From Auanema rhodensis (taxonomy: Eukaryota; Animalia; Nematoda): a stretch of DNA of 64,000 nucleotides. Below, one piece after another: positions 2,556 through 20,623 of the stretch. The notes under the pieces are model-generated. The model saw nothing but the letters and a program-made list of their open reading frames with translations. It did not search any database and had not been told where the DNA came from. The stretch covers positions 13,764,001-13,828,000 of the forward strand of contig OZ059895.1 in NCBI GenBank assembly GCA_964057225.1, given 5' to 3'. The first letter of the stretch is position 1, and each line of letters begins with the position of its first letter. The translations under genes and the position numbers were made by a program.

Positions 2556-3619
2556 ATCATCGGTTCAGCCTGAAGAGACTGTAACTATTATATCATTCCA
2601 GCTTGAAACGTAAAAAATTTATTTTAAGAAAAAATCTCCCACGAAAGCTTAAAGGAAAAACTCATTCTGGATTATCATATATTTCAAAATAATAAACTTC
2701 CCGCGTTTGCGTATTTATTTCAAATTTAACGGTTGCATACGCAAGGAAAACTGCTTGTACAACTTGAAAGTTGTCACAGCGTAGGCGATTGAAGTTCTAC
2801 AATCGCATATAGATTTGTAATCATTGAATAATCGATGCTTAAAAGATCTTATTTGAAAAATATAATGAAAAACAGTTTGAAGATTTAATATACTTAATAC
2901 CATAAAGCTAATTGAAACGTCTAGTTTTTCCTTTTAAATTATAAAATGGATTACGCTTTTAATAAATGCGTTTTTTTTCTGATTACAAGCGTGCTTTGTA
3001 ATTGAAGAAAATTCCTTTGATTTTATGTATATGTTAATTTAAATACCTTCGCTTTAGCCTTTTTGAATAAAAACTCAAATATTTGACTCTGCTGTGAATA
3101 TCTAAAAATATTATTAACACCTCACCACCTTAAAAAAGTTAGTTTTAAAAAAAAAACGAAGACTTAGAAATATTCTTTGCCTCGAACTATAACTTGACAG
3201 CTCAAAATGCACATCAAGCATTTTTACAATATTATATATAATCCTAATTAAATAATGTTTTTGTACACATTCTATTGATTTTCTATCATGTTTATTCTTA
3301 CCATTAATTGATTTGGTAAAACTTTATATTGGGAAATTATTTTTTTGACATATATGCCCTATGCCTTGTCGATAATTTTTGATTTTTTAATAGTTTTAAT
3401 ATGCCTGTTATCAAATAAAAATGAAAATTGGTCCTACAGCGCGGACGAAAAATATTCGAGAGAATTTCAAATCGCGACCTATAACAGAAGTGAAGTAGTT
3501 TTCTAGACTATTCCTTTATATGAGTTAGGATGCCTTTTTATACGATTTTTTATAAGGAGTTTTTATAATATTTGTTTGGAATATCTTGATTTAAGCTTGT
3601 TAATCATTTTCGGTCGGTA

Positions 3620-4353
3620 ATGGCGCGTCAACCACCAGTTTCTTGGGCTCAAAGAGAGCAATTTATCTTCTTGAAGTTTGAAGTTGATGAAGTCAAACTC
3701 GAAGATTTATCAATTACTGATGGAAACAAACTTCATTTCGCGTAATTATCCTTTTTCTTATCAATATAATAAATATATTTTAGAGGATCAAGTCACAATG
3801 AAAAATTCGAGACTACCATGGAACTTTTTGATGAAGTTGTTTCAGTTTAATGGTATATGCGTTTACGTTCTGATTTCAGGTTAAATTTGATGAAATCAAA
3901 AAAGCCAATAATCGCGTTTTTGAAATCTCTATCCCTAAGAAAGAAGCTCAATGGTGGCCTAGACTTCTTAAAGCTAAAGGAAAAGTATGTTGTCTCAGTT
4001 GATGACAATGAATGATTATTGTAGGCTCATTGGCTCAGAGTAGATTTCGATAAGTGGGTAGATGAAGATGAAGAAGGAGCTAGTGAAGAAGCTCCATCTG
4101 GAATGGGTGATTTCGATCTTCAGTCTTACATGCAACAGATGGGAGCTGGAGGTATTATTCTTAAATTTTAAACGAAACATGTTCTTAAAAATAGGAATGG
4201 GAATGGGAATGGGCGGCGGCGGCCCTGCCGACTTCGAAGGTTTGGAGGATGAAGAAGAGGATGGTATTACATTAATTTAAAAATTGTATTTCACTATTTT
4301 TTTTTGTAGAAATGCCAATGTTGGAGGAAGATGGAGAAACCAAGGCAAATTAG
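3620..4353 (+). CDS. p23/PTGES3 Hsp90 co-chaperone (CS domain), multi-exon
   Basis: Spliced protein MARQPPVSWAQREQ...WWPRLLKAKGK|AHWLRVDFDKWVDEDEE carries the p23 signatures WAQR, WPRL and VDFDKWVDED, plus a Gly/Met-rich acidic tail. TAG at 4351-4353. Confidence 0.93.
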
Positions 4354-4476
4354 ATCAATTTTTGAATTGTTATACTCTCATAAGAATGTTCTCATGCTCG
4401 TTTGTTTTGGTTGTTTGTGTTCTTACGCGTTTTTTGCTACCAACTTTAATTAATGTTTATAATTAATAAATTTCTT

Positions 4477-7400
4477 TCAAAATGGTGTGTTGTTCAATTT
4501 AGTTTCGTCAAGTTCCAAGAGCTCAATGCAATTTTTCCAAAGAATAGCATCCTTATTTAGAGTTGTTAGGTCATTATAGTCCTCGACAACCTGTCCCACA
4601 GAAAGTTCACCGAGGGGGAAAGGATAGTCGGTGCCGAGAACGATTTTTTCCTGAAATACGCAAAAATGAAATGGTATAAGAAGTGTTGACAAACTATTCC
4701 AACGGTGTGAATTAGCAAGCGTAGAGCTTCTGGATCATGTACTAGAGAATCAGTCCAAATTTTATTGTTAAGTTCCATAGGAGAAACATTACAGTCTGTA
4801 GCGCATAGATCTGGCCTCACCTAAAAATATAATAAAAGTTAGTTTCCAACTAATTTGTTTCTTTACCTTGTAGCCATGAGCCACTCTTCCGGCTATTTGA
4901 GGATAAGACCCACCTCCATGAGCAAAACAGAAGCGCAAACGGGGGAATAGTAGAAGCACATTGCCCATTAAGATAGAGCATATAGCTTGAGCTGTTTCGG
5001 AAGGCATCCCTAAATTTCAAAATAATTTTTTTTTCTCAACTCTTCCTTGCCTACAAGCCATGGCATCCAATACTTTTTGAGCCTACCATCCCAACCATGC
5101 ATATCCCAGGGATGAACAAAAATTACGACATTGAGATCTTGGCATTCCTAATATGAATTAATGTTATTTTGCTACGAACTATATCGCATTCCGAATAAAC
5201 AAATAAATATACCTTATATAAAGGCCAGAATTCTTTGTCATCCAAGCTTTTTTCTCCAATATGGGATCCTACTTCGATTCCACGGAAACCCATAGAAACA
5301 CATCTCCGCAGTTCCTAAATAGTGAATGTAAAAATATATATAATTTTTAATAGATTAATATTAATATTAATATTTTTTGGTACAAGAAAAATAAGAGCAG
5401 ATTATATATATATATTGAAAAGTATAAGCAAATTAGATAACACTCTTAAACTGAGTGAACAAGAGACGGAAGATGGAAGAATAAAAACTGAAAGGAGGTT
5501 GTCAACAAAATCTACTAATATCAATTCATTTTTTTCAAATAAAACGTAATGAGCGGTTGAATTTCATTATTACCAGGGAGAAGCTCAATTTCAAGTTCAT
5601 TTTATTATTCTACGTCTTATAAATAGAGAAAAGCTCGTGGTGTCACTATATATATTTCGTTTTACCTAAATCTTTTATAAATATTCGCTGTTTTACTAAT
5701 TGATCGAATTAGTTCATATTTCATTTAGAATTAAGATTTGAGTAGAATCAGTTAATTCATAGCCTATTCTTCTTCCAAAGCAAAACTTATTTATGGAACT
5801 ATAAGTTGTTTATTTATTTCATGTTCATTTGTTATGAACTGTGAGAGGATGTACAAAGTACTTTGGAAATACAGAATATTTTATTTCTGCTATACTAGGC
5901 GGTCCATTACCATGAATATATTATATTATATTTTTTTTAAATGAAAATGTTGGGTATATTTTCTATTTTCCTTCCTATGGCTAATTAAGATAAATTACTA
6001 CAAAGTGGATATTTTCTATGTAGGTTTGTTCGATCCGAATTAATCTATTCAGCTAGCATCAGAAAGCTGCTCAGTTTTTGTAGGAAAACTACAATCATGT
6101 AAATACTCCTTAATTTCCTTTCCTTTCCGTATTTAAGCCAAACGAGTGTCATAAAGCTCATTACAATCAATCAACTTTGAATTTTCTGAAAAAAAGGAGA
6201 TTCCGACGTTTTTTGAAGAAAATGGAAATTAAAAATAAGTACGATGATGCTAAAGCATTATTTAACAGTATTTAGAGAGAATGTATAGTCATTTGATTCT
6301 ACGAATTTAAGTTCTTATCCAAAGTCTACCCTGTATTCTGCATCTTTTAGTCTTTTTACAAAAAAAAATAGAAAAAGCACCATAAAAGTAGTTAGAGAAG
6401 GAGAGAACTAGTTGGTGGGTGGGACTAACTAAAGCAGAAGAAGAAGAAGAAGAAGAAGCCTAAACCCCGCCTCTCTTTTGACAATCAATTGGCTAGGGGC
6501 TGTGCCTCTCTTCCTTCCCACCCCTTTAGCCGTACGTGTGGTACTATGTGTGGCCAGACTGCACTGATGAGCTTTCTTATAGTTTTCGTAAAGTTTTTAC
6601 ATATTTTTCATATCCATTTTTTAATATTCAATCTCCTTACTATATATTAATTGTAATGACTGATTAAGAGCAAGCATTACGTTTGTATTAACACTTTATA
6701 TTGAGATATTCTTCTTTTTAAAATAAGTATAGTCTATGAATATGTAATGACTCTATTATATTGGATACTAATAGAGAATATTACTTTATATTATTTTATC
6801 ATAATTATAACTTTTTTTATTAAATTAATCATTCATTTTCTATGATTTCTTTGTTCTTTTCATTAATAAGTATTACGATCTGTTTTTCAAGATACCATAT
6901 AAGCTTCATTTTTTATTTCAAAACTTACATAACTTGAATATTGAACGATCATTGATTTGTATTTTACAGGTTGCAGGTTTAGCCAACATTGGGTGTTATC
7001 TACTATATTAGAAATATTTAATCCTAATCTTTATAATCATCTGAAAGCTAATAATGCATCAGTTACATCTTTTACTTTTTCTTCTGTTTATGCTCATGAT
7101 TTCTGGATCAGGACGGTGAGTATACATTTACATTAAAAAAAAAAGAAGAGAAGCCTTTTTTGTTAAACAAATTAATTTTGTCACGTCTGAGGAGTTGAAG
7201 AGAACACAAGAATTAGAGAAGGGGGGATAACAAATGCATTGACTTTCCAAAGCTGTAGTAATGACATGCCTTGCTTATGGTATAAAGTCAGTTTGGTTTC
7301 TTATACTACCTTCAGAATCTATATGATTTGATTTGGACCTCACTAAATTTGCCATCACAGATCGAAGAGTTCTCGTAAAGGAGCCAAGAGAGAAAGAAAA

Positions 7401-10400
7401 CGAAAAAAGAGAGATAGGGAAAAAAAAGGAAAAAAAGATGGAGAGATAGAGAGAGAGTGAGGACGAGAAAAAGGAAATACCGATAGAAGAGAGCTGGTGC
7501 AGGAAAAGAATGGAGAACGAAAAGAAAGAAGTCAAAACTAGTCCCACACGCACACAGCATTGCCGCAGCTGCCATGGTTCTCAAAGCGTCTGTGTGAAAA
7601 TGGAGCTTTTTGTTTTGAAGCCAAGAAGCAAATTATTAGTTGAAAAGGGAAAATGATGCTGACTATCCATGTAGCGGTTGATGGAATTATGCTTCATAAC
7701 AGAAAAAAAGAAGCGAATGATGAAAGGATTAGAAGTAAAGAGAGTGAAAGAGTAACTAATTAGATTTCATAAATATAGTCAGTGATTTGACTATATCTAG
7801 CTTTTCAATATTCTACGGATTTTCTTTTTTTTCACTTTTTAATCATTTCATAAAACATAGGAGAAGCTATTGTTCCCTCTAGGACCATATTTATTACGTT
7901 TCGTTGGGCTATTTTTACTCGAATATATTCTATTTCACCGAATATTTAAAGTACACTGATAACGATAAAATATGTGAAACTTTTAAAGTTCAGGAGGATG
8001 AAATTTTTTACTAAGAGTTGAAGAAGAGCTCAAACTTTGCCAAACCTCCCCAATCTCGTCAATCATGACGTTCATGAGTCTCAAAGGCTCAGCATAGCAT
8101 TGTGCTCACAGATCATTAGTAAGCGTGGGATGATTCGCTTAGCATCTTTGTGAAAATTTTGTATTAAAGCATAATCACAAAACCTTTAGATTGACCCTCT
8201 ATATAACTATCTCAATTATTAGAAATTGTTATTTTTATATGCGACATCATGAAATGTGAATTGAAAAAAAAATCCAAATTGATAACAATGGATATTTCAA
8301 ATTTTTACGTTTTCTACTTAAATATATATTATTTAAATTAACTTTTTAACATAAAAATATTATATTTTTGTTGTAAGTTAGGAGATATAGACGTATTATC
8401 AAAGTATTTTTATATAATTTTCTATTATTATCTTCATAAATACTTGTTGATGAATTTGGAACTTATGTACAGAACGTCTGATGGAGCACGTAAGGAACAA
8501 GAAAGTTAAGATGTTCATTGGAAATGATTATATTACATTCCAGTCTGAACTAATTTAATCCAATGAATTCTTACTACCAACATTATATTGGATAGTTCTT
8601 TTTTTCTCAAATAGGCGTTGTCAATCTGAGTTGTCCTCCCGCACCACAACGAACAGAGGGAGATAGAGAGAAAGAGGCTTAGAGAGAGAGGAGGAGGAGG
8701 AGGAGGAGAGAGAGAGAATAATATAGAAGCAGCTAGCGAAAGACTAAACGAATGAGTGAGAAAAAGTATTGACTAGACACCAGGTCCAAGGGGAATTGAA
8801 ACGGATGACGGAATAGCCATCTAACAGAGAGCGGAGTATGAAACGAAGGAAAGAAGGCAAGGAGTAGTAGGCCTTAAGTTATCGGGAGCTGCGGACCTTA
8901 GGTTGTCCTTATTCTGACCGAAAGCACTTGTCGAAAGATTACAAAAGCAGCTGTGATCATTCGACATGTTGCTCTACACAAGATGTCAACAGCGCTATCT
9001 TCAAGTAAATAAGAGTTCGTTAAAAAGAACGATGACCAATTAACTCAGAACCAAAATGTGAAAGCTAATAACCATGAAATGGGAAAGAATGTTTTTGGAA
9101 GATAATTATAACTTAGGAAGTACTGCACATGTCTGTTTTATGTATGAGAAAACTTTGACGATTCACAAGGATCCATGGGTGGGCTGATTAAACAGCTTCA
9201 CGAAAATTAGATTACACTCAAATCTTTATTTTTCTCGTTTCCCCCCGTCCTTTTACTGCATCAACAATTTTTCTCATGTGCGGTCGGCTGTTCACAGATG
9301 ATTAACTTAGTTTTTTTTAAAATTTCGCAGCATATTGTAGTGCATGGGATGAATGAAAGTTCTCAATATAAAGTAAAGTGTTTCCATAGATGTAAATGGA
9401 AAAATTATATAAATTAAGATATAGTTACAAGAGGAGATTATAACTGTCTATGAGCTAAATAATATACCATTTAGTATAATAAGTTTAATTTTCAGAAAAG
9501 CAGTTTATAGAAGGAATTCTCGTCAGCTGCGGCGTTTGAGTCGAAACTATGATTGGGAAGTGGATGAGCACGGAGGGCTTAGACCGTTTAATCCTGGAAA
9601 GGTAAGATCGCATTGCCTTTTTCTCAACATATTCTTTCGGCGATTCTATGCTTTAGAGGTTATGCACGTGCTCAAAGTGGCATTGCATTTCTATTTCAAG
9701 ATATGTCCGATGTATTCTCAAGACCTTTGTTCTATTCTATGAATTTGAATAAATAAGCTATTAGAAAGAGAGAAAGTGAGAGAGAAAGAGGTTGCGATTG
9801 AAAGCGAGCAACAAAGAGAATGCTTTTGGAATAAGATGATCATAGCTGAATATATCACGTGGCCTTGTTGATTTATAATTTTGAATTGAGGAAGCAGACA
9901 CATCCGAATTCCAAAAAGCATTGGTTTCATTAAGAACAGTATGATTGCTATAAAAGCTTGTCATCGATTTGTCTCAAATATGAAATTTGAGTTCCTGCAT
10001 CAAGTTGCTAAGGCACGTCATAAACTCTCATCCAACATGTAATTTCTATTCTTTCAGTCAAGCATTATTAAGTTGCAAAACTTGGAGAGACATGATTTTG
10101 AGAGAGAAGAAAATATTTAGAATAAAGCACGAAAATTTATTAATCATACGCATAAAAGAAGCTTATATTCATAATTAATCAGAAAATAATATGAAAATTA
10201 TCAATTTTTAGATGATTCGAGCGACTGAAAGCCAAATGTGTGCAAATGATTCATACATTCTTCAAAAGATCATGGCTGGATACAACCGACATAAAATTCC
10301 AGGAGGACGAGTAAGTTTTTAATTTAGTTATATAAAAGTTTTTCTCTTTACTCCTCCATACATGTATTGTATGATTTGTGCAGTAATGCTCCGGAATTAG

Positions 10401-13400
10401 CCAAATCTCACATAGTTAGTCGGCTGTTGTCGTAGCGGATCTCAAAGATTGATGCGAAATCCTGCAAACAATTTGGCTTTTGTGTCCATTATTCCTATTT
10501 CACCAAATATACGAGTCCGTTGCCATTAAAGTTTCCAAGCCAAACAAATATTTTTTTGATTTAATTTTCGACAAAACATACGAAAAGCAACATGTATACG
10601 GCCAAGATTTAGGAAATTTACTTTTAAACATGATAGAGATGAAGTTCTCCAAAAGCGACTAAGAAAAACTGATAATAGCATTGAAGTAGTTTTACTTAGA
10701 TTTCTGATGCATATCCTTCAATCCAAATATGGTGATGGGCTGCGGCAAGATAATAACCTATTTCCATACGTTATAAGCCTGAGACATCCCATATGGACAC
10801 TAGACGAATTTATTCTGTTCCGTATTCCTGCTTATATTATCTGAAAACCAAGTGAAAGAACATTGTTGGGCAACAACTATTTCAAGGCTTGGGAATGCTC
10901 AATCGAAACTTGAATGAAGTTTCTAAAAAGTAAACAAATTCTTTTAGCCTGTTTTGCCTTTTTTAATGACAGACAAAAATTAAGGAAATAGATAGTTAGC
11001 CTCATCAAAAATTGTGATGACCTTTCTCTCCAGGGAAATGAGCCACAAGACAGAAAGCTGGTTGCTAGTGTTAGTGACGAAATTAGATTTTCGCATTTTG
11101 GCTTCAACCCGGCCATTCACACGATTTCACACAGTTCGCTTCTCTTCGTTATGAGAAATTCTATTCAGACTCAAAAAGTGAGAGCAAAAACTTTAAAAAG
11201 AGGAGAAAAACTTGAAGGGAGGATGCCATTATTTTCGTCGAGGACGACGTTATAAGCTCTGAAAACAGGAATCAAAGATGTATGACAAATCACAACGATC
11301 TTTTATATATATAATCGCAAAAAAAATCTTTTGCTTGAGACTCAGTAGTATCCTAACCACAATAATAAAATTGTAATTCAACTAGAGTTTGTATTTCATT
11401 AAAATCAAAAACATTATAATCTTTATTTCAGGTTGATGTACAGGTTGAAGTATGGGTACAAGAGATCACAACGATCTCAGATATTACTAGTGATTTTCAA
11501 GTAAAATTTGTTATTTTATTAAAAAAATTAATAAAATAATATTATTTTCAGTTAGATATCTACATATCCGAGATGTGGCTAGATCCAGCTCTCGTATATA
11601 GTGACTTAAATCCATGCAAACAGAATCTATCATTGAATAGTGTTCTTTTGGAAAAGCTTTGGACACCAAATTCATGTTTCATCAATTCAAAAACGGCTGA
11701 TATACACAAAAGTCCATTCCCAAATATATTTCTGTTGATATACTCCAATGGATCAGGTATTTTCCAAGTTTTTTTCGATTGAAAGAAATATTTTTAATAT
11801 ATATATAGTGAGAAAAACATGAAAATTAGAAGATAATTTATTGATTCTAAATGAATCAGTAAAATTTAATTTATATATATTACTGCTTTCCAATCTGTTG
11901 ATTAATCGTATTCATTATGTGCTAAATGGAAAGCATGAGAGAGATAATTTCTTTTCAAAAAAAAAAGAAAAAGAAATATTTCTCTCGACTCGAAGAATAT
12001 TTGATTGCTATGACTGGGATTATCACGGATATTTGAAAAAGAAAGTTGGTATCCTTTCTAGTTAGTTAAGTTGTTCCTTACCATAAGATACTCATAAGAT
12101 TAGATTGTTATGATTTTTCTTATTTCAACTCAAATTAGAAATTTCTTGAAAGTTTTTTCCATGAATGGATTAAGTTTTTGCTATCAACTTATGTAATGAA
12201 GATGATTGTAGTTTAGAAACAAAAACAAAAGAAATCGTAAAAGCCTTAAAGAATCAGCCATTTCCTTTGATTTCATTTGAATATCAGATAACTCTTCCGA
12301 CTACATAATGTGAAAAGTTTAATTCATTAGATCTTTGAATTAAAAATTCAAGCAAGCAGTCAAGTTTTTAGTTTTTGTGTGAATATATTAGCCTTTCCTA
12401 TTTGCTATATCTTTTTGTTTGTGTAAGAACTCAAAGCGTTTTCATTGATTTGAACAAAATTTAAGATCTTGAACTCTAAGTACTAGCTTAGCTTCATTTT
12501 CGTCAAAATAATGCTTTGGATTGGTTTGTAGAGACATCTATTGGAGATGAAATCGATATGAATGCTTATATGTCGTTATATTGGTAATATTCATGCTTAT
12601 AAAAAATGAGGGAGTTGTGAAATGCTGAGAAAGGAGAAAGAACTAACGTTAAAGCTTTACTACGCAAACCACCGAAGAATAGAAAGACGGATGAATTGGA
12701 GAGATAAAGAACTTTGCATCGATCTCCTTCCAGACAACGCATTGGCTGCCCTCGCTAATAGTAACTGGAGTTTTAGAAATAGACTCAGCGAGAAAAGATA
12801 TCGGAATAGGGAATGAATGATGTTGATGAGGAATTGACACTCCAATGATGCTTGAGTTTCAGAGTAAAATGAAATAAACTGAGAAACATGAAGAATATGC
12901 TTAATACATTCCAAGTTTTACCATATCAATTCATTTCTTATACTTCTTTCAAATAGCTCAGACAAATTTCTTTGAAATAACGGAAAAAGAACCGGTAGTT
13001 TTAACTTCCTGTCACTGTCGTTATAATAAAGATTCACAAATCATATTTGATGAATAAGTATGTTTAAGTTTGTGAATATAAATTCATAAATCATGTTTAT
13101 GTCATGAGCTACTATAGCATGATAAAGCATGAGCATCTAGCAGCATGATTATGAGAATAATCAAGGATTATATATAAGGGGTTAGAAAAACTGAATTAAG
13201 GCTTTATCTTATTTGACAAAAAAAAAAGAAAAATAATCAAAATTATTCTTAATTCTGTGTGTTTAAGTGTGGACGAACTACCGTTTGAAGCTACAAGGAC
13301 CATGTTTGATGGATTTGACACGATTTCCATTTGATAATGTTACATGTTCATTAACATTTGAATCTTTTAAGTGAGTTTATATAGTATATAACTAGATTTA

Positions 13401-16400
13401 TAATTATTTATTTTAGTTATAACACAGATGAAGTTCAAATGTCTTGGACTGAAGCTGGAGTTAGCAAAATGAGAGAAAAAATGGAATTGGCTGATTATGA
13501 ATTAGAAAAGATAACAAATATTCGAAATGCAGAGGTAAAATTTGATTTGATTTTATCTTTTATCAGTCCTTTATATTTCTTTTTAAAACTAAATTTGATG
13601 GCTTAATTCACATATACATTTCAGCCGTATCCAGCAGGATTATGGCATGAATTAACCATGATGTTTCATTTCAAACGTCGAGCTGGATGGTATATTCTAC
13701 AAGCATATCTACCAACTTATCTCACTATTTGCATTTGTAGGTTTATTTTTCTTTGAAAAATTTAAAATTCTCAGAAATCAATATGAATGTAATTTACGTT
13801 TTTAAACTTGGAGCTTATTGATACATAGCATTGATTTTTTTGGTTCGTGTTAGTCTTTCTGAAGTTGATCGTCAATCCCTACTAAACCCTTATGATTGGT
13901 CACAAATGGCAGTCTCGTGCTCGGAAAATAAAAAAAAACACAAACCATGTTCAAATCAGGTTCAAAAAAAGAATTCAAGTATTTTCTAGAACTTAAACTA
14001 AAGAAAATAACCTTAAGTTACTGAAATAAAAAAAGTTCTAAGCTCAAAACAAAAAACTTTTCAACCTGAAATCATAACGCAATCAGGTATTCGGACCAAG
14101 TATGCTTTATCAAGAAGACTAATGTCACGCAATGAAAGATTTCTCTTGGGAATAGACAACGGAGTAAGCATAACGAATAAAGATGAAAGATTGATAAGTC
14201 TTGCTTTCTTACTCTCATTCCCAACCTTTACATAAATAATGAAGAAGAAACCCTTTTGTTAAATTTAGCTTATGGGACTACTTTGAGGGATTGTAGGAGA
14301 AGTTAACCCTACATAGAAAAAAAAAGAATACGAATAAATCATGTTCTATAGAGAATTCTTAGAGTTCTTGGAGCAGAATAGTGAAATTCTCTGATTTCAG
14401 CTTGGATTTCTTTTGCACTTGGATCAAAGGCTATTCCAGCCAGGACAATGCTAGGTGTCAACAGCTTATTAGCTATGACATTCCAGTTTGGTAACATTAT
14501 TCGGAATCTACCACGCGTCTCTTATGTGAAGGTGAACGAATTTAAATATTACAACAAGGAGTGAAAGTTTTATTTTCACTACAAAAACATTCAAATATTG
14601 GAATAAATATAATTTGGATCATTTAAGGCAATTGATGTTTGGATGCTATCTTGTATGACTTTTGTTTTTTGCTCATTATTAGAACTTGCTTGGGTTGGAT
14701 ACTTGTCTCGTGAAGATGAGGTATGACAAATATAAATATTTTTAAAGTTTAAACTATTTTTACAGGAACCTTTAACACAAACACCAAATACACCGAGTTC
14801 TGCTCCGCCACTTCCTGCTAAAACGCCGCCACCAAATAGTGGATATCATAGCACTATGAGCACAATGCATAGGTTAGAAACATATTAAACTGATTAGAAA
14901 TCTTATATTGAAGACGAAATAAAACACATTGTGAAGAAGAATCAGCTGCTTTGCTCTCTTTGAGAGATAATGATTACGGCTATATTCCACCTGGTTTTGG
15001 TTTAAATGGTAATCTTGCATCAGCTATGCGTTCACTTGGAGGAAGGTATATAGAACAACCAAATCGTACAACATTCATAAACTTTTCTAGATGTTCATGT
15101 GAACCACATAATCAATCATATTCTGCGGCATTAGATGATCTTCCAGAATCAGGAGGAAGACCTACCGAGAATTGTTCAAGGTAATTCCAAAGTTGTTAAG
15201 CTTATACTAACTACTCCACTAATTCAGACGCCAACGACGTGAACGATTGGCAAAACGTATTGACACTCTCTCTGCCATAATGTTTCCATCGTTGTTTTCT
15301 TTATTCAATATTGCCTATTGGAGTCATTATCTCCGAGACGGTTGAATATAGTATACACATCAACCTTTGTATGTATCATTCATGTATAAGATTGTAGAAC
15401 AAATTTCAATCTTTTCATACGCTCATTAGGCTATTCTCATTTACTATACGGGTTCTTAGTATTAACTACTCAAAGTTATTTTATTGTTTTTTTATAATCA
15501 AATTATACTTTCCATGCTGCCTTTCTAAACTGCCGATCTATCAATATCTGAGAGTATTATAGTTAACTTCATAACGATTGTGCAAATGCTCAGTCTTTTT
15601 GTATTATACATAGATACTAATGGCTCAATCTATCAACGACTTTTCACTTTTTTCTGAGAACAGTCCTACCATAGATATATCCACACATTCAATCTTATTT
15701 ATGATTTTAGGGATACAGTTCGTAGAATAAGGTATTATTCAAAATTCATTCATACTTACCTAATTATTTGTGATTAAACTTTTAAAAAATAAAATAATTT
15801 GTATAAATATTTGTAAACATTAAATGTTTAACTTTATTTATTTATTTATAAAATGGAAATGGAACTAACTTGAATTGCTCGAGGAATATCATTCATTGGC
15901 AATGTTCCTAAAGGAACAAGACGATCAGGGGCAATTTGACATTGAGCATAGATATCATCGTTCACAAATCTTGAAACGATTTCAGTGTCAGCGGGTTTTG
16001 CCTCAAATTTGAAATTTAAAACACAAAAATGAGATTCAAATTACCCAATAACTGAACATTACAGGAACTGTGCTGATACATTGTACATTGCAATGAGCAC
16101 GATCCATATCATATAGACGAACAGTTGTATCAAAACAATTTGGTTCAACAACACTAATTAATAAGAAAATAAAATGAAATTATAAAATGAAATTACCGAA
16201 AAAGCTTTCCATCTTTAATCATTTGTGTTGTTCCATCTTCTTTATGATCTAATCGTACAAATCCACCATATCCAAATTGCTTAAATATAATAAATATTAT
16301 TATAATTCAATAAATTACTTACTTTCTCAAAATCTGGTATATTTTTTGGAAGTATATGAGCATGTATATCAATCTTTCGCATATTGTTAGCTAAATTAAG

Positions 16401-16528
16401 ATACTGTAATGTGTAAACAACATCCAATTTTATTATAAATTATAATAAAATGCTTGTTCTTATAACTTTAAATATTTCATTTTTCTATTAATAAACAAAC
16501 CTGCAGAAAATTCACAAATTGCTGACAT
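4477..16528 (-). CDS. acsd-1: 2-amino-3-carboxymuconate-6-semialdehyde decarboxylase (ACMSD). 5' exons lie at 15870-16528 and 3' exons at 4477-5314, separated by a 10,555-nt intron.
   Basis: Reads MSAICEFSA|..[10 protein letters not shown] (HxH metal motif)..[10 protein letters not shown]|[19 protein letters not shown]|[41 protein letters not shown]. The phase-0 junction CAA|gttagt...tttag|GAA joins the two halves in frame. Confidence 0.93.
6405..6570 (+). promoter_or_regulatory. GC-rich putative core promoter of the nested channel gene
   Basis: A local GC-rich island in AT-rich DNA with GC/GT-box-like motifs (GGTGGGTGGG, CCCCGCCTC, CCCACCCC), an ATTGG (CCAAT) box and a (GAA)n run. It lies about 400 nt upstream of the first acceptor at about 6970. 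Confidence 0.4.
7054..15345 (+). CDS. lgc-55: Cys-loop ligand-gated chloride channel, LGC-55-like (tyramine-gated) amine-gated family; nested in the ACMSD intron
   Basis: Signal peptide [20 protein letters not shown] (7054-7115), then exons at about 9496, 10212, 11432, 11552, 13268, 13417, 13626, 14401, 14628, 14767, 14913, 15091 and 15228. Cys-loop [16 protein letters not shown]2 [19 protein letters not shown] has the anion-selective PAR motif. The N-terminal [15 protein letters not shown] matches my recollection of LGC-55. TGA at 15343-15345. Confidence 0.85.
7385..7535. repeat. Purine-rich (GA/GAA) low-complexity tract in channel intron 1
   Basis: Almost pure A/G on the + strand (gagagatagagagagagtgag...). 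It generates spurious Phe/Ser/Leu ORFs on the - strand. Confidence 0.7.
8655..8720. repeat. (GA)n/(GGA)n microsatellite
   Basis: Sequence agagagagaggaggaggaggaggaggagagagagaga. Confidence 0.8.
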
Positions 16529-16819
16529 CGTTCAAACCTGAAAATAATATAAAAATGAAAAACAAAACATCAAATATTGGCAATAAGATATGTGTCTTCA
16601 TTGATCGACATCAGTCTTTTGATGACCTTTTGTGATCAGGTCTGTCAAAAAAACGATGATCGATAAAAAGAAAAATATTGTTAATATATGAATCGTTTAT
16701 ATATAAATCGATTATATAATATGATTTATAAGTTTATAATGTATTTTTTATTTTAATTTAAATACAAATATTTATTAAAATATTTATTAAAAAGAACAAT
16801 TAAGCAAATAAATGAAATA

Positions 16820-19103
16820 TCAGTCATCATCGTCATCTTTTGAACGAAATTTATCAGCAATCCACCTAAAAATTATTAAAATTTTTATATATTCTTTAGT
16901 AAAATACCTCGTCTTATTTTGAACTTGTTCTTGAGCTAAATTGAAGCACATAGCTAGTAAAGCCATACCGAATAAGAGATAAACACTGGTGATTACTAAC
17001 TTTTCTTGAGAATCTTTATCATTTCCAACAGAAGCACCTGGGAAACGATCACCAAACCCTGAACAATCATGTAAAATCTTCGTAGAAAACACAATTCAAT
17101 ATTTCTTTCACAAACGAAATGTTATGTCCCATGACATTGTTTCTAACTAGGGAATATAAGTGAGAAACCAATAGTTTTTCTAACAACATCGCCGATTCCC
17201 TAGAGATGTTCTCGTCAGGACGCAAAAACTTCCGAAAAGAGTGGAATTCTAACGTTATGCATTCATGTGATATTAAGAAAATGAAAACAAAATTACTAAT
17301 ATTATTGTATTTTATATAATTATATATAAATATATTAAAATATATTGAATAATTAATAAAATTCATACCTATTGTTGTTAGAGAAATGTAACAAAAGTAA
17401 AAACTTTCTAAGAATGTCCATCCTTCCCATATTTTGAAAAGAATTGTACCTGAAATTCAATAAATAGTTTAAGAAGTGTTGTTTAAGATAAATACAAACC
17501 TGCTATTAGATAAGCAAACATAGTAAAGACAACTAAAGAAAGTGGAACAGTTATCTTATCCAATTGAGCTTGTGCTGTTTCTCGGACTTCTAATTGTTCC
17601 ATTTCAACTCTAGCTGTTAATAGATCTTCCACATCTGGACCACCTGGAAATTCAAAATCTCATTCTTAAAAATAAATAAATTAAGTACCAATGCCTAAAG
17701 AATCTATTGAGCTATCAGCTTTTACACGATGTCCACGTGTCAAACGAGATACTAAAGAGTTTGCTCTTCGAATTTTTGCAGCCTAAGAATGATAATTTAA
17801 GCTTTTCTTTGAACTTCAAAACCAACTTTTCTTTTTTTATGCCATAATATCAAACGATACTTCAAACGAATTGATTGAGCAAACATAAATCTAAATTCAA
17901 ATTCATTAGTTTCTTTGCTAAATTGAACGAATATTTAGTTGCCTGAAAATTTTAGCCATAACATCTCCGATGTTTGTTAAGAAGAGAAGCATAAGAGGGA
18001 TTCCAATTATAGCATAAAGCATAGTTAATGTTTTCCCAATATATGTTTTAGCAGCAGTATTTCCATATCCTTAAAGTACTGTATATATTTCTAAAATGTC
18101 AATGTTATTACCAATAGTTGTAATAACTGTTAAGGAATACAGAAAAGCTCCTGTAAAAGTCCATTGAGCTGCTTGTTTAAACTCTTTTCCATCATATCCA
18201 CGTCTAATAGCAGACATACATACTTTTTGAAACTTTTTAACCTTTAAACATCAAAATAAATAATTAATTTAATTATTATTTTAAATTTACTTCAACATAT
18301 ACAGCATTCTTCCATTGTTGTTCATCCAAACGGTTCACACGGAAAGTAGTATTCCAGACAACAGCAACAGCTCGTTCTCGAGCTGAAGTTACTTCAGATT
18401 GAATCTGAATCAGAAACACTATGTAAACGTCACATATTTAAATAAAAATAATAAAATATATTTAGTAACAACATAACAAGATATTGCTAACCTGTTCTTC
18501 ATGAGGTCCTTCAACAGCTTGAAATATCACTGCCCCTAATAATGCATAGCCAACCACCTAAAAACAACAATCTTTTAAAAGTTTTAGGAAAAAACATTTG
18601 TTTCTGATTTTGAATTTTTATCAAAAATCCCAGTAGATTCATGACATAAACTGAAATGGGGTGTAGAGAAGGATATCATGCGAATCGATGTCATGCTAAA
18701 GTCTATTTCTCTATAGGGAAAAGGCTTTGCTGTGTAACTATGACGTTTCGGGAGATGAAGCATTTGCCATTTTGGGACTTCCGATGACAAGTACTCACAG
18801 ATTCTCTTTTATCTTTTCTTTCGGCCAACAAGCCAAAGTGACTTACGAAAAACATTGAGATCTCAAATACATCACCCGATTTCGAAAAGATTTCCTTCTT
18901 CTGATTTGAAAAGTTACTGGTTATACGTATGGATATCTGTATCAAACAAACTCCTAGCACTCTCAACCTTGTTCTTTTACTAATTATATTGAAATATAAC
19001 TAACCAAAGCACACAATCCGATATGAGAGAAAAAAAAGGCGATTATTTTCTTTACAAGGTTTACAACTCTTGTGACCTTCGAGCGACGGTGGCGTCTACC
19101 CAT
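16820..19103 (-). CDS. TWK-family two-pore-domain (K2P) potassium channel, multi-exon
   Basis: Reads MGRRHRRSK..FFSHIGLCALVVGYALLGAVIF..WTFTGAFLYSLTVITTIGYGN (pore 1)..YAIIGIPLMLLFL..WTFLESFYFCYISLTTIGFGD (pore 2)..YLLFGMALLAMCFNL..KDDDDD*. Confidence 0.93.
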
Positions 19104-20623
19104 GATTACGTAGTGGTAGAAGCCAAATGTTTGGTAAACTCACATAACCAACAATCTATAAAGCAGATTATGAAAAATGAAAAATTTTGAGAATAATCTA
19201 AGAGATTTATTCAGAAAAATCTTAAAAAGATGTTCTATGAAATATAGACTACTCGAAAGTTTGTTTCACTAATCGAAATGAGAAAAACCTAAGAAACAAC
19301 AAAAGTTTTCAATAATGGACGTGCTATCGTTCGAAGTGTGTTTTTCGGAAGAAAAGCTTTCTTTACATGCTCAAAATGGGCGGATCCTTCTCCATGAGTC
19401 TGTATTGGTTCTGACATCAATCCACATGAGGAAAAAGAAGAAAACGCAGAATGGATGAAGTTGGGAGGAATCGGCTAGTACATCAGCAAGCCATTTGAAT
19501 CTCATCTCTTTCCTTCTTCTGTTCCGCTGTTTCGAGCTTTCCTCCGCTGCCTCATCACAGCCTTATGCTCTCTCCGACTAACAATAAGTTCAATGGCCGA
19601 ATTTAGGAGAAGATAGAACATATAAAAAGAATGAAATTAACGACAGTAGAAATGTGCGTTCTTAGTTTATGCATATTATACTTACAAACTTTCATAGAAA
19701 TATTTAGATTTTGATTCTTTAGGAACATTTTAGGGAACTTTGAAATCTTAGGCAAATGCAATAACTCACTGAAGAGATAACTCAAGGTTAATTATAGCAT
19801 ATTATTAGATTATTTCCTTCCAGTTTATATGCAAAAACTGATATATGTACTTATAATGTTTTATGTAGAAACTTCATGAGCTGACTAATAGATTATTTCC
19901 TTTTTTTCAAATTAAAGTATAGTTTTCAGATGCTTTAGAAAACATATTCTTACAAGATAACATTGTTCGAGAGAGATCTATTGAGTAAATTAGTTAATAT
20001 CCAAACTGCAATCACTCAGAGGTATATACAAGAGTGGTCACTTGATGTTCAGCAGTGTACACTTACATTTGCTTAATGCAACTGCATTTCAGCTTATGAA
20101 TGGACGAACGAAAGCAAATAAGTTTAATTTATCTTTGACTGACCTGTCATTAAAATACTAACCTAGTCACAAGTTTCCTAATAATTTTAACTTAAAACTA
20201 ACTGATTGTCATTGTAATTGGTTATTCAAACATTTGTTTTTGAATATTGATATATCAATTAGTCATATTTCCTTATAATATACCTATTATTTTAGATATA
20301 AAAATTAAAAAATCGCAAATAGTTTAAAATGAATAATTAATTTGAATTTAATTACATTTAATTTAATTTACTTTTCGATATTGCTTTTGTTATAACTATT
20401 ATAACAATATATCATCGATAAGATATCTATGTATATTCCTGCCTTAGTGAACTTGACAATCCTGTTGTACGCAATCAATAAATTAATTCTCCAAGGTGTA
20501 CGTAACAATAAAATATTTGTACAGTGATTGTATCTTTTGTTGACTTTATTTATTTATTTATTTATTTTAATTTATGTAATTATTTTGTTTTTTTTTAGTT
20601 ATGGTTCTATTTCGATAAGTATT

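Follow-up and report, generated by a model that had tools for sequence, protein, structure and literature searches.

In a window of 64,000 nucleotides (nt) from Auanema rhodensis (assembly GCA_964057225.1, contig OZ059895.1, positions 13,764,001 to 13,828,000 of the forward strand; coordinates below count from its first letter), a complete gene for ACMSD (acsd-1) lies on the minus strand, and its fourth intron holds the whole of a Cys-loop chloride channel gene, lgc-46, on the plus strand. Three-frame translations and splice sites gave an ACMSD model of nine exons and 341 residues, whose introns measure, in order, 43, 43, 43, 10,555, 65, 41, 46 and 44 nt. Read on the minus strand, exon 4 ends in GCAATTCAA at 15870 and is followed by gttagt, intron 4 closes with tatttag at 5315, and exon 5 starts with GAACTGCGG at 5314, joining exon 4 in phase 0. 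A sequence-only reading of this DNA had described ACMSD as split at this very junction by one 10,555-nt intron containing an entire antisense Cys-loop chloride channel; the letters are as it claimed, and the gene models and RNA bear the arrangement out. It had also put the remaining ACMSD introns at 40-110 nt, and these are indeed short but span 41-65 nt. The parts of the host gene are listed below.

16323-16382, minus strand: ACMSD exon 1, with the ATG at 16382 and the HxH metal motif; matches human ACMSD 2-19; donor gtaagt.
16197-16279, minus strand: ACMSD exon 2, from splice sites and frame; 89% identity to the Caenorhabditis elegans exon; antisense of the RNA loose end behind 16154.
16045-16153, minus strand: ACMSD exon 3; RNA joint 16000/16044 (43-nt intron, four runs); tblastn match to C. 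elegans.
15870-16001, minus strand: ACMSD exon 4, which directly precedes the host intron; human ACMSD 84-127; RNA contig pieces at 15869-16000 in four runs.
5315-15869, minus strand: ACMSD intron 4, the host intron; 10,555 nt, GT..AG, phase 0; RNA loose end at 15869 equal to the start of exon 5.
5213-5314, minus strand: ACMSD exon 5; human ACMSD 128-161; Pfam Amidohydro_2 positions 97-131.
5051-5147, minus strand: ACMSD exon 6, with the His174 equivalent in FVHPWD; human ACMSD 167-193.
4867-5009, minus strand: ACMSD exon 7, with the His224 and Arg235 equivalents; human ACMSD 195-240, E 2e-14.
4695-4820, minus strand: ACMSD exon 8, from frame and splice sites, with a weaker donor, gtttgt; colinear with C. 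elegans.
4477-4650, minus strand: ACMSD exon 9 with the stop codon and the Asp291 equivalent in GTDYPFP; human ACMSD 284-331.

When single ACMSD exons (1, 4, 5, 6, 7 and 9) were compared with solved structures, the best match was human ACMSD (2wm1, 4igm, 4ign, 4ofc), above other Amidohydro_2 enzymes. The matched human residues are colinear (2-19, 84-127, 128-161, 167-193, 195-240 and 284-331), and since exon 4 ends at residue 127 and exon 5 begins at residue 128, nothing has been lost at the long intron. The aligned columns retain H-x-H, FVH, AHGGG, GR and GTD. We take His6, His8, His174, His224 and Asp291 of the human enzyme to be metal-binding or catalytic and Arg235 to be substrate-binding, and equivalents of all of these are present in the A. 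rhodensis protein. Judged by its sequence, the minus-strand gene is ACMSD, of the Amidohydro_2 superfamily, with a predicted decarboxylase role on ACMS.

The RNA evidence consists of assembled contigs from four runs of one study, aligned to 10180-16179. The contigs cover exons alone, with GT..AG joints, and therefore represent spliced RNA; none fell between the lgc-46 exons in the aligned region. In all four runs the ACMSD contig carries exon 4 and then letters that are the reverse complement of the first 30 bases of exon 5 (from 5314), with a shift of one base at 15869 because the intron and exon 5 both start with G. The loose letters at 15869 are thus the start of exon 5 in every run, and the proposed 15870 to 5314 junction is present in RNA. 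These contigs are about 1060 nt long, with 626 nt after exon 4 and about 300 nt before it, the latter consistent with ACMSD exons 1-3 plus a 5' untranslated region (UTR).

The nested lgc-46 gene was modelled on the plus strand with 14 exons encoding 514 amino acids, and all 13 of its introns are GT..AG. Its ATG lies at 7054 and its stop codon at 15343-15345, with every exon inside 5315-15869. RNA accounts for 12 of the 13 introns, 11 as direct GT..AG joints (10310 to 15226) and the twelfth (9602-10211) by a loose end, while exon 1 and intron 1 are placed, as the probable solution, by homology to the Auanema protein and by splice phase. The lgc-46 contigs hold at least about 259 nt of mRNA upstream of 10212; on the 5' side the mRNA extends past the ATG by at least about 91-94 nt (to about 6960 or earlier), assuming no further 5' intron. 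At the other end the contigs run to 15760-15800, so that the mRNA extends to at least 15800, with an AATAAA near 15799, and ends about 70 nt from the donor of ACMSD exon 4. The model matches Pfam Neur_chan_LBD and Neur_chan_memb colinearly and has a signal peptide, a C-x13-C loop, a PAR motif before M2 (anion selectivity) and helices M1-M4. Together the two genes form an antisense nested pair: the inner gene (about 6960-15800) lies within the host intron but on the opposite strand, host splicing bridges it, and the two transcription units have no exon in common. The exons of the inner gene are as follows.

7054-7115, plus strand: lgc-46 exon 1, putative, with start codon and signal peptide; the sole ATG-to-GT segment that both has a hydrophobic run and fits the splice phase; matches the N-terminus of Auanema protein P0170.
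9496-9601, plus strand: lgc-46 exon 2; its end is the RNA loose end before 10212; conserved in C. elegans.
10212-10310, plus strand: lgc-46 exon 3; RNA joint from 10310 to 11432.
11432-11500, plus strand: lgc-46 exon 4; RNA joints.
11552-11756, plus strand: lgc-46 exon 5, ligand-binding domain; Pfam Neur_chan_LBD 50-113, E 3.7e-10; RNA joints.
13268-13370, plus strand: lgc-46 exon 6, Cys-loop; Pfam Neur_chan_LBD 115-147; RNA joints.
13417-13534, plus strand: lgc-46 exon 7; RNA joints.
13625-13736, plus strand: lgc-46 exon 8, M1; RNA joints.
14401-14531, plus strand: lgc-46 exon 9, M2 with the PAR motif; Pfam Neur_chan_memb; RNA joints; 98% identity to the C. elegans exon.
14628-14720, plus strand: lgc-46 exon 10, M3; Pfam Neur_chan_memb; RNA joints.
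14766-14872, plus strand: lgc-46 exon 11, cytoplasmic loop; RNA joints.
14914-15045, plus strand: lgc-46 exon 12, cytoplasmic loop; RNA joints.
15091-15180, plus strand: lgc-46 exon 13; RNA joints.
15228-15800, plus strand: lgc-46 exon 14, with M4, the stop at 15343-15345 and a 3' UTR of at least 455 nt; RNA contig pieces to 15760-15800; AATAAA near 15799.

The channel had been read from the sequence as an lgc-55-like tyramine receptor, an identity that did not survive comparison with its relatives. These were found by searching a representative-protein library with the 68-residue lgc-46 exon 5. A word search with the best relative returned one ortholog per nematode species and, as a second tier, ACC-1 and ACC-3 proteins, and the Caenorhabditis cluster includes 'Probable ligand-gated ion channel 46' (Q95Y52). 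In local BLASTP over the full length, the A. rhodensis protein showed 92% identity to that of Auanema sp. JU1783 and 74% to C. elegans LGC-46 (Q95Y52; 492 amino acids). A FastTree phylogeny of 117 proteins placed the channel as sister to the Auanema protein (support 100) and within a 53-row LGC-46 clade (support 100) that reaches from Trichinella to Caenorhabditis, with the ACC-1 and ACC-3 groups outside. By identity, tree and synteny, the channel is a one-to-one ortholog of LGC-46 in the ACC family, and its orthology predicts gating by acetylcholine. LGC-46 is one of eight ACC-family subunits, is acetylcholine-gated and functions presynaptically, at the terminals of cholinergic motor neurons (PMC8841521, PMC5102579); acetylcholine gating is established for the C. 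elegans and H. contortus proteins (PMC8841521). Because identity, tree position and synteny all fit LGC-46, orthology to the tyramine receptor LGC-55 was rejected, LGC-55 itself being absent from the alignment and the tree.

The same nest is present in other nematodes. On C. elegans chromosome III (BX284603.4, GCA_000002985.3), lgc-46 (plus strand, 10001-20403) falls within the span of an Amidohydro_2 gene (minus strand, 3118-29443), and in tblastn the acsd-1 exons flanking lgc-46 break between residues 128 and 129, at the same intron as in A. rhodensis. The C. elegans acsd-1 gene is presumably clone Y71D11A.3. C. elegans lgc-46 is clone Y71D11A.5 (PMC5364397). The C. elegans locus thus shares both orthologs, their antisense orientation and the host intron with A. 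rhodensis, and differs in the length of that intron (about 17.2 kilobases (kb) versus 10.6 kb here) and in an extra 5.2-kb intron before exon 4. Five more nematodes show the break after residue 128 together with the same inner gene.

Auanema sp. JU1783 (locus L002): host intron about 5.2 kb, lgc-46 nested.
Pristionchus entomophagus (locus L003): host intron about 8.5 kb, lgc-46 nested.
Bursaphelenchus xylophilus (locus L006): host intron about 15.5 kb, lgc-46 nested.
Strongyloides ratti (locus L007): host intron about 3.8 kb, lgc-46 nested.
Ditylenchus destructor (locus L012): host intron about 9.5 kb, lgc-46 nested.

Since the nest occurs in nematodes of both clade IV and clade V, it is at least as old as their common ancestor. 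Between the lgc-46 stop codon and the host exon there are 2787 nt in C. elegans and 55-590 nt in the other six genomes. In S. ratti the stretch between the lgc-46 stop codon and ACMSD exon 4, which lies on the opposite strand, is only about 55 nt (L007 12278-12333), so the lgc-46 3' UTR there either overlaps the host exon in antisense or is extremely short.

Because lgc-46 occupies its intron, ACMSD tends to be called as two fragments. The expectation that gene finders would split the gene held for four of the six public nematode annotations, listed below, and a single ACMSD call spans the nest in C. elegans and P. entomophagus.

Auanema sp. JU1783: ACMSD fragments at L002 8293-9153 and 14278-14909, of 224 and 145 amino acids.
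S. ratti: ACMSD fragments at L007 7037-8542 and 12303-12800, of 207 and 147 amino acids.
B. xylophilus: ACMSD fragments at L006 1076-4786 and 19218-19956, of 214 and 139 amino acids.
D. destructor: ACMSD fragments at L012 3275-5405 and 14920-17358, of 218 and 142 amino acids.

The split calls in at least four public nematode genomes need merging, and counts of kynurenine/NAD pathway genes in those species will be off. The acsd-1/lgc-46 arrangement is already contained in the public C. elegans annotation and is thus known, and as a feature it is ordinary; the eLife 2016 paper on LGC-46 mentions neither the intron nor the nesting. The pair represents a stable local gene order common to clades IV and V and opens no new biology. 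It does matter for reading mutants, in that alleles of C. elegans lgc-46 fall within acsd-1, which has been investigated in connection with lifespan and NAD+.

We consider it highly probable that acsd-1 and lgc-46 form an ancestral antisense nest of separate transcription units that has been kept since before the split of clades IV and V, most likely passively. Transcription of ACMSD passes through the whole of lgc-46, and splicing removes the 10.5-kb intron. For its part, lgc-46 would be transcribed from its own promoter, probably located in the approximately 1.65 kb that separate ACMSD exon 5 from about 6960; its transcript ends short of ACMSD exon 4 by the roughly 70 nt given above. The nest would persist without selection for any interaction, because a breakpoint inside it would break the host ACMSD gene. 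Several observations weigh against this account. All RNA came as assembled contigs of a single study, which give neither strand nor level, and lgc-46 exon 1 and the 3' half of ACMSD fall outside the RNA alignment. The ACMSD contigs of all four runs end near 4493, about 16 nt short of the modelled end of the stop codon (642 nt after exon 4 being needed); our guess is that this end marks a branch in the assembly graph where the 3' end of a convergent plus-strand gene overlaps. Nor is the nest universal: no ACMSD exon was found within 10 kb of lgc-46 in Brugia pahangi, Steinernema carpocapsae, Toxocara canis, Trichinella and Heterodera schachtii (loci L004, L005, L008, L009, L010 and L011), mostly parasitic nematodes in which ACMSD has either been lost, been moved or un-nested, or lies beyond the flank. 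Finally, that acsd-1 and lgc-46 are uncoupled is an inference within this account.

The alternative that bears most directly on this last point is that functional coupling keeps the nest together, transcriptional interference or chromatin damping leaving less ACMSD in lgc-46 neurons or silencing lgc-46 in ACMSD tissues. Such coupling could account for the recurrence of the nest, at an unchanged intron, in seven genomes from two clades whose gene order is otherwise scrambled, and for the closeness of the lgc-46 3' end to the upstream host exon, as measured from the stop codon in six of the seven genomes and from the mRNA end here. Nested pairs, however, are expected to persist anyway, breakpoints within them being fatal to the host gene; mRNAs of ACMSD and lgc-46 occur in the same samples; and lgc-46 works outside the nest, as the five nematodes without a nearby ACMSD exon indicate. 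Among the best-ranked literature matches, moreover, we found no publication naming both genes or both clones. We therefore regard coupling as improbable, and give an equally small chance to its more specific form, in which the nest would be a regulatory unit: lgc-46 transcription in cholinergic and GABAergic neurons would lower ACMSD and so raise local de novo NAD+ synthesis, or host transcription would silence lgc-46 outside neurons. In that case, phenotypes assigned to acsd-1 could be confounded by deletion alleles of lgc-46, in which acsd-1 intron sequence is missing, and those assigned to lgc-46 by manipulations of acsd-1.

Two further explanations, one for how the channel came to its place and one for the split of the host, fare far worse. 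According to the sequence-only reading, an lgc-55-like tyramine receptor had moved into or out of the ACMSD intron, its other location being like that on chromosome V. Only the general features of Cys-loop anion channels speak for this reading; the 74% full-length identity to LGC-46, the place within the LGC-46 clade and the assignment of LGC-46 to the ACC family (PMC8841521) speak against it. Synteny also contradicts it, since on chromosome III of C. elegans lgc-46 already occupies this acsd-1 intron, as it does in the five other nematodes, so that no movement into or out of the intron took place; we give this explanation almost no credence. Alternatively, the ACMSD halves could be half-genes or pseudogene pieces joined by misassembly, or two separate genes, and the paired Amidohydro_2 fragments annotated in Auanema sp. 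JU1783, S. ratti, B. xylophilus and D. destructor would fit this. But in all four runs the two halves are connected by RNA contigs, and they complement each other exactly, corresponding to human residues 1-127 and 128-336, each alone being short of some catalytic residues. The layout also recurs in seven independent, concordant assemblies, which leaves an artefact, including a misassembly at either intron end, with next to no probability.

The acsd-1/lgc-46 pair, read as a passively kept antisense nest, resembles known systems. Intron 27b of human NF1 holds OMG, EVI2A and EVI2B on the opposite strand, likewise complete and independently transcribed antisense genes in one intron of an unrelated host that are conserved across a large clade; the genes and the phylum differ, and NF1 has three nested genes versus one here. 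The cholinergic locus cha-1/unc-17 of C. elegans, with a shared leader exon and promoter on the same strand, is similar in having a neuronal gene within an intron of another gene and in its conservation in nematodes. Unlike cha-1/unc-17, acsd-1 and lgc-46 are antisense to each other with no common exon, so no splicing switch operates between them.

The host intron also contains a conserved non-coding block.

7564-7660: conserved non-coding block in lgc-46 intron 1; 92% identity over 97 nt with the corresponding intron in Auanema sp. JU1783 (L002 10314-10410).

This identity compares with 65-80% for the flanking exons in the same species pair, and the block contains a CAGCTG E-box and AT-rich homeodomain-like sites, which makes it a candidate intronic enhancer of lgc-46. 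It had no match in the compared loci beyond Auanema. A structured RNA was considered for the block and rejected, with fold z-scores of +1.1 and +1.3, no stable fold on either strand and no Rfam match. Over 4000-17000, Rfam at the gathering threshold and ARAGORN gave no matches. The sequence-only reading had also placed a promoter island in the intron; the GC content of 7001-10000 is only 34%, versus about 29-30% beside it.

On the 3' side of ACMSD, the convergent plus-strand gene lies at about 3614-4280 and is conserved with the Auanema sp. JU1783 locus (L002 7472-8014). Directly upstream of ACMSD is a gene for a two-pore-domain potassium channel (Ion_trans_2, TWK-like) at 16820-18500 on the minus strand. 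An Ion_trans_2 neighbour also follows the nest in Auanema sp. JU1783 (L002 15084-16972) and D. destructor (L012 18368-22407), and in Heterodera an Ion_trans_2 gene lies near lgc-46 (L011 24701 onwards) at a locus without an ACMSD exon. In P. entomophagus, a tyrosine-phosphatase gene (L003 18591-21014) occupies the ACMSD intron preceding the lgc-46 host intron, and at the corresponding position C. elegans has its 5.2-kb intron.

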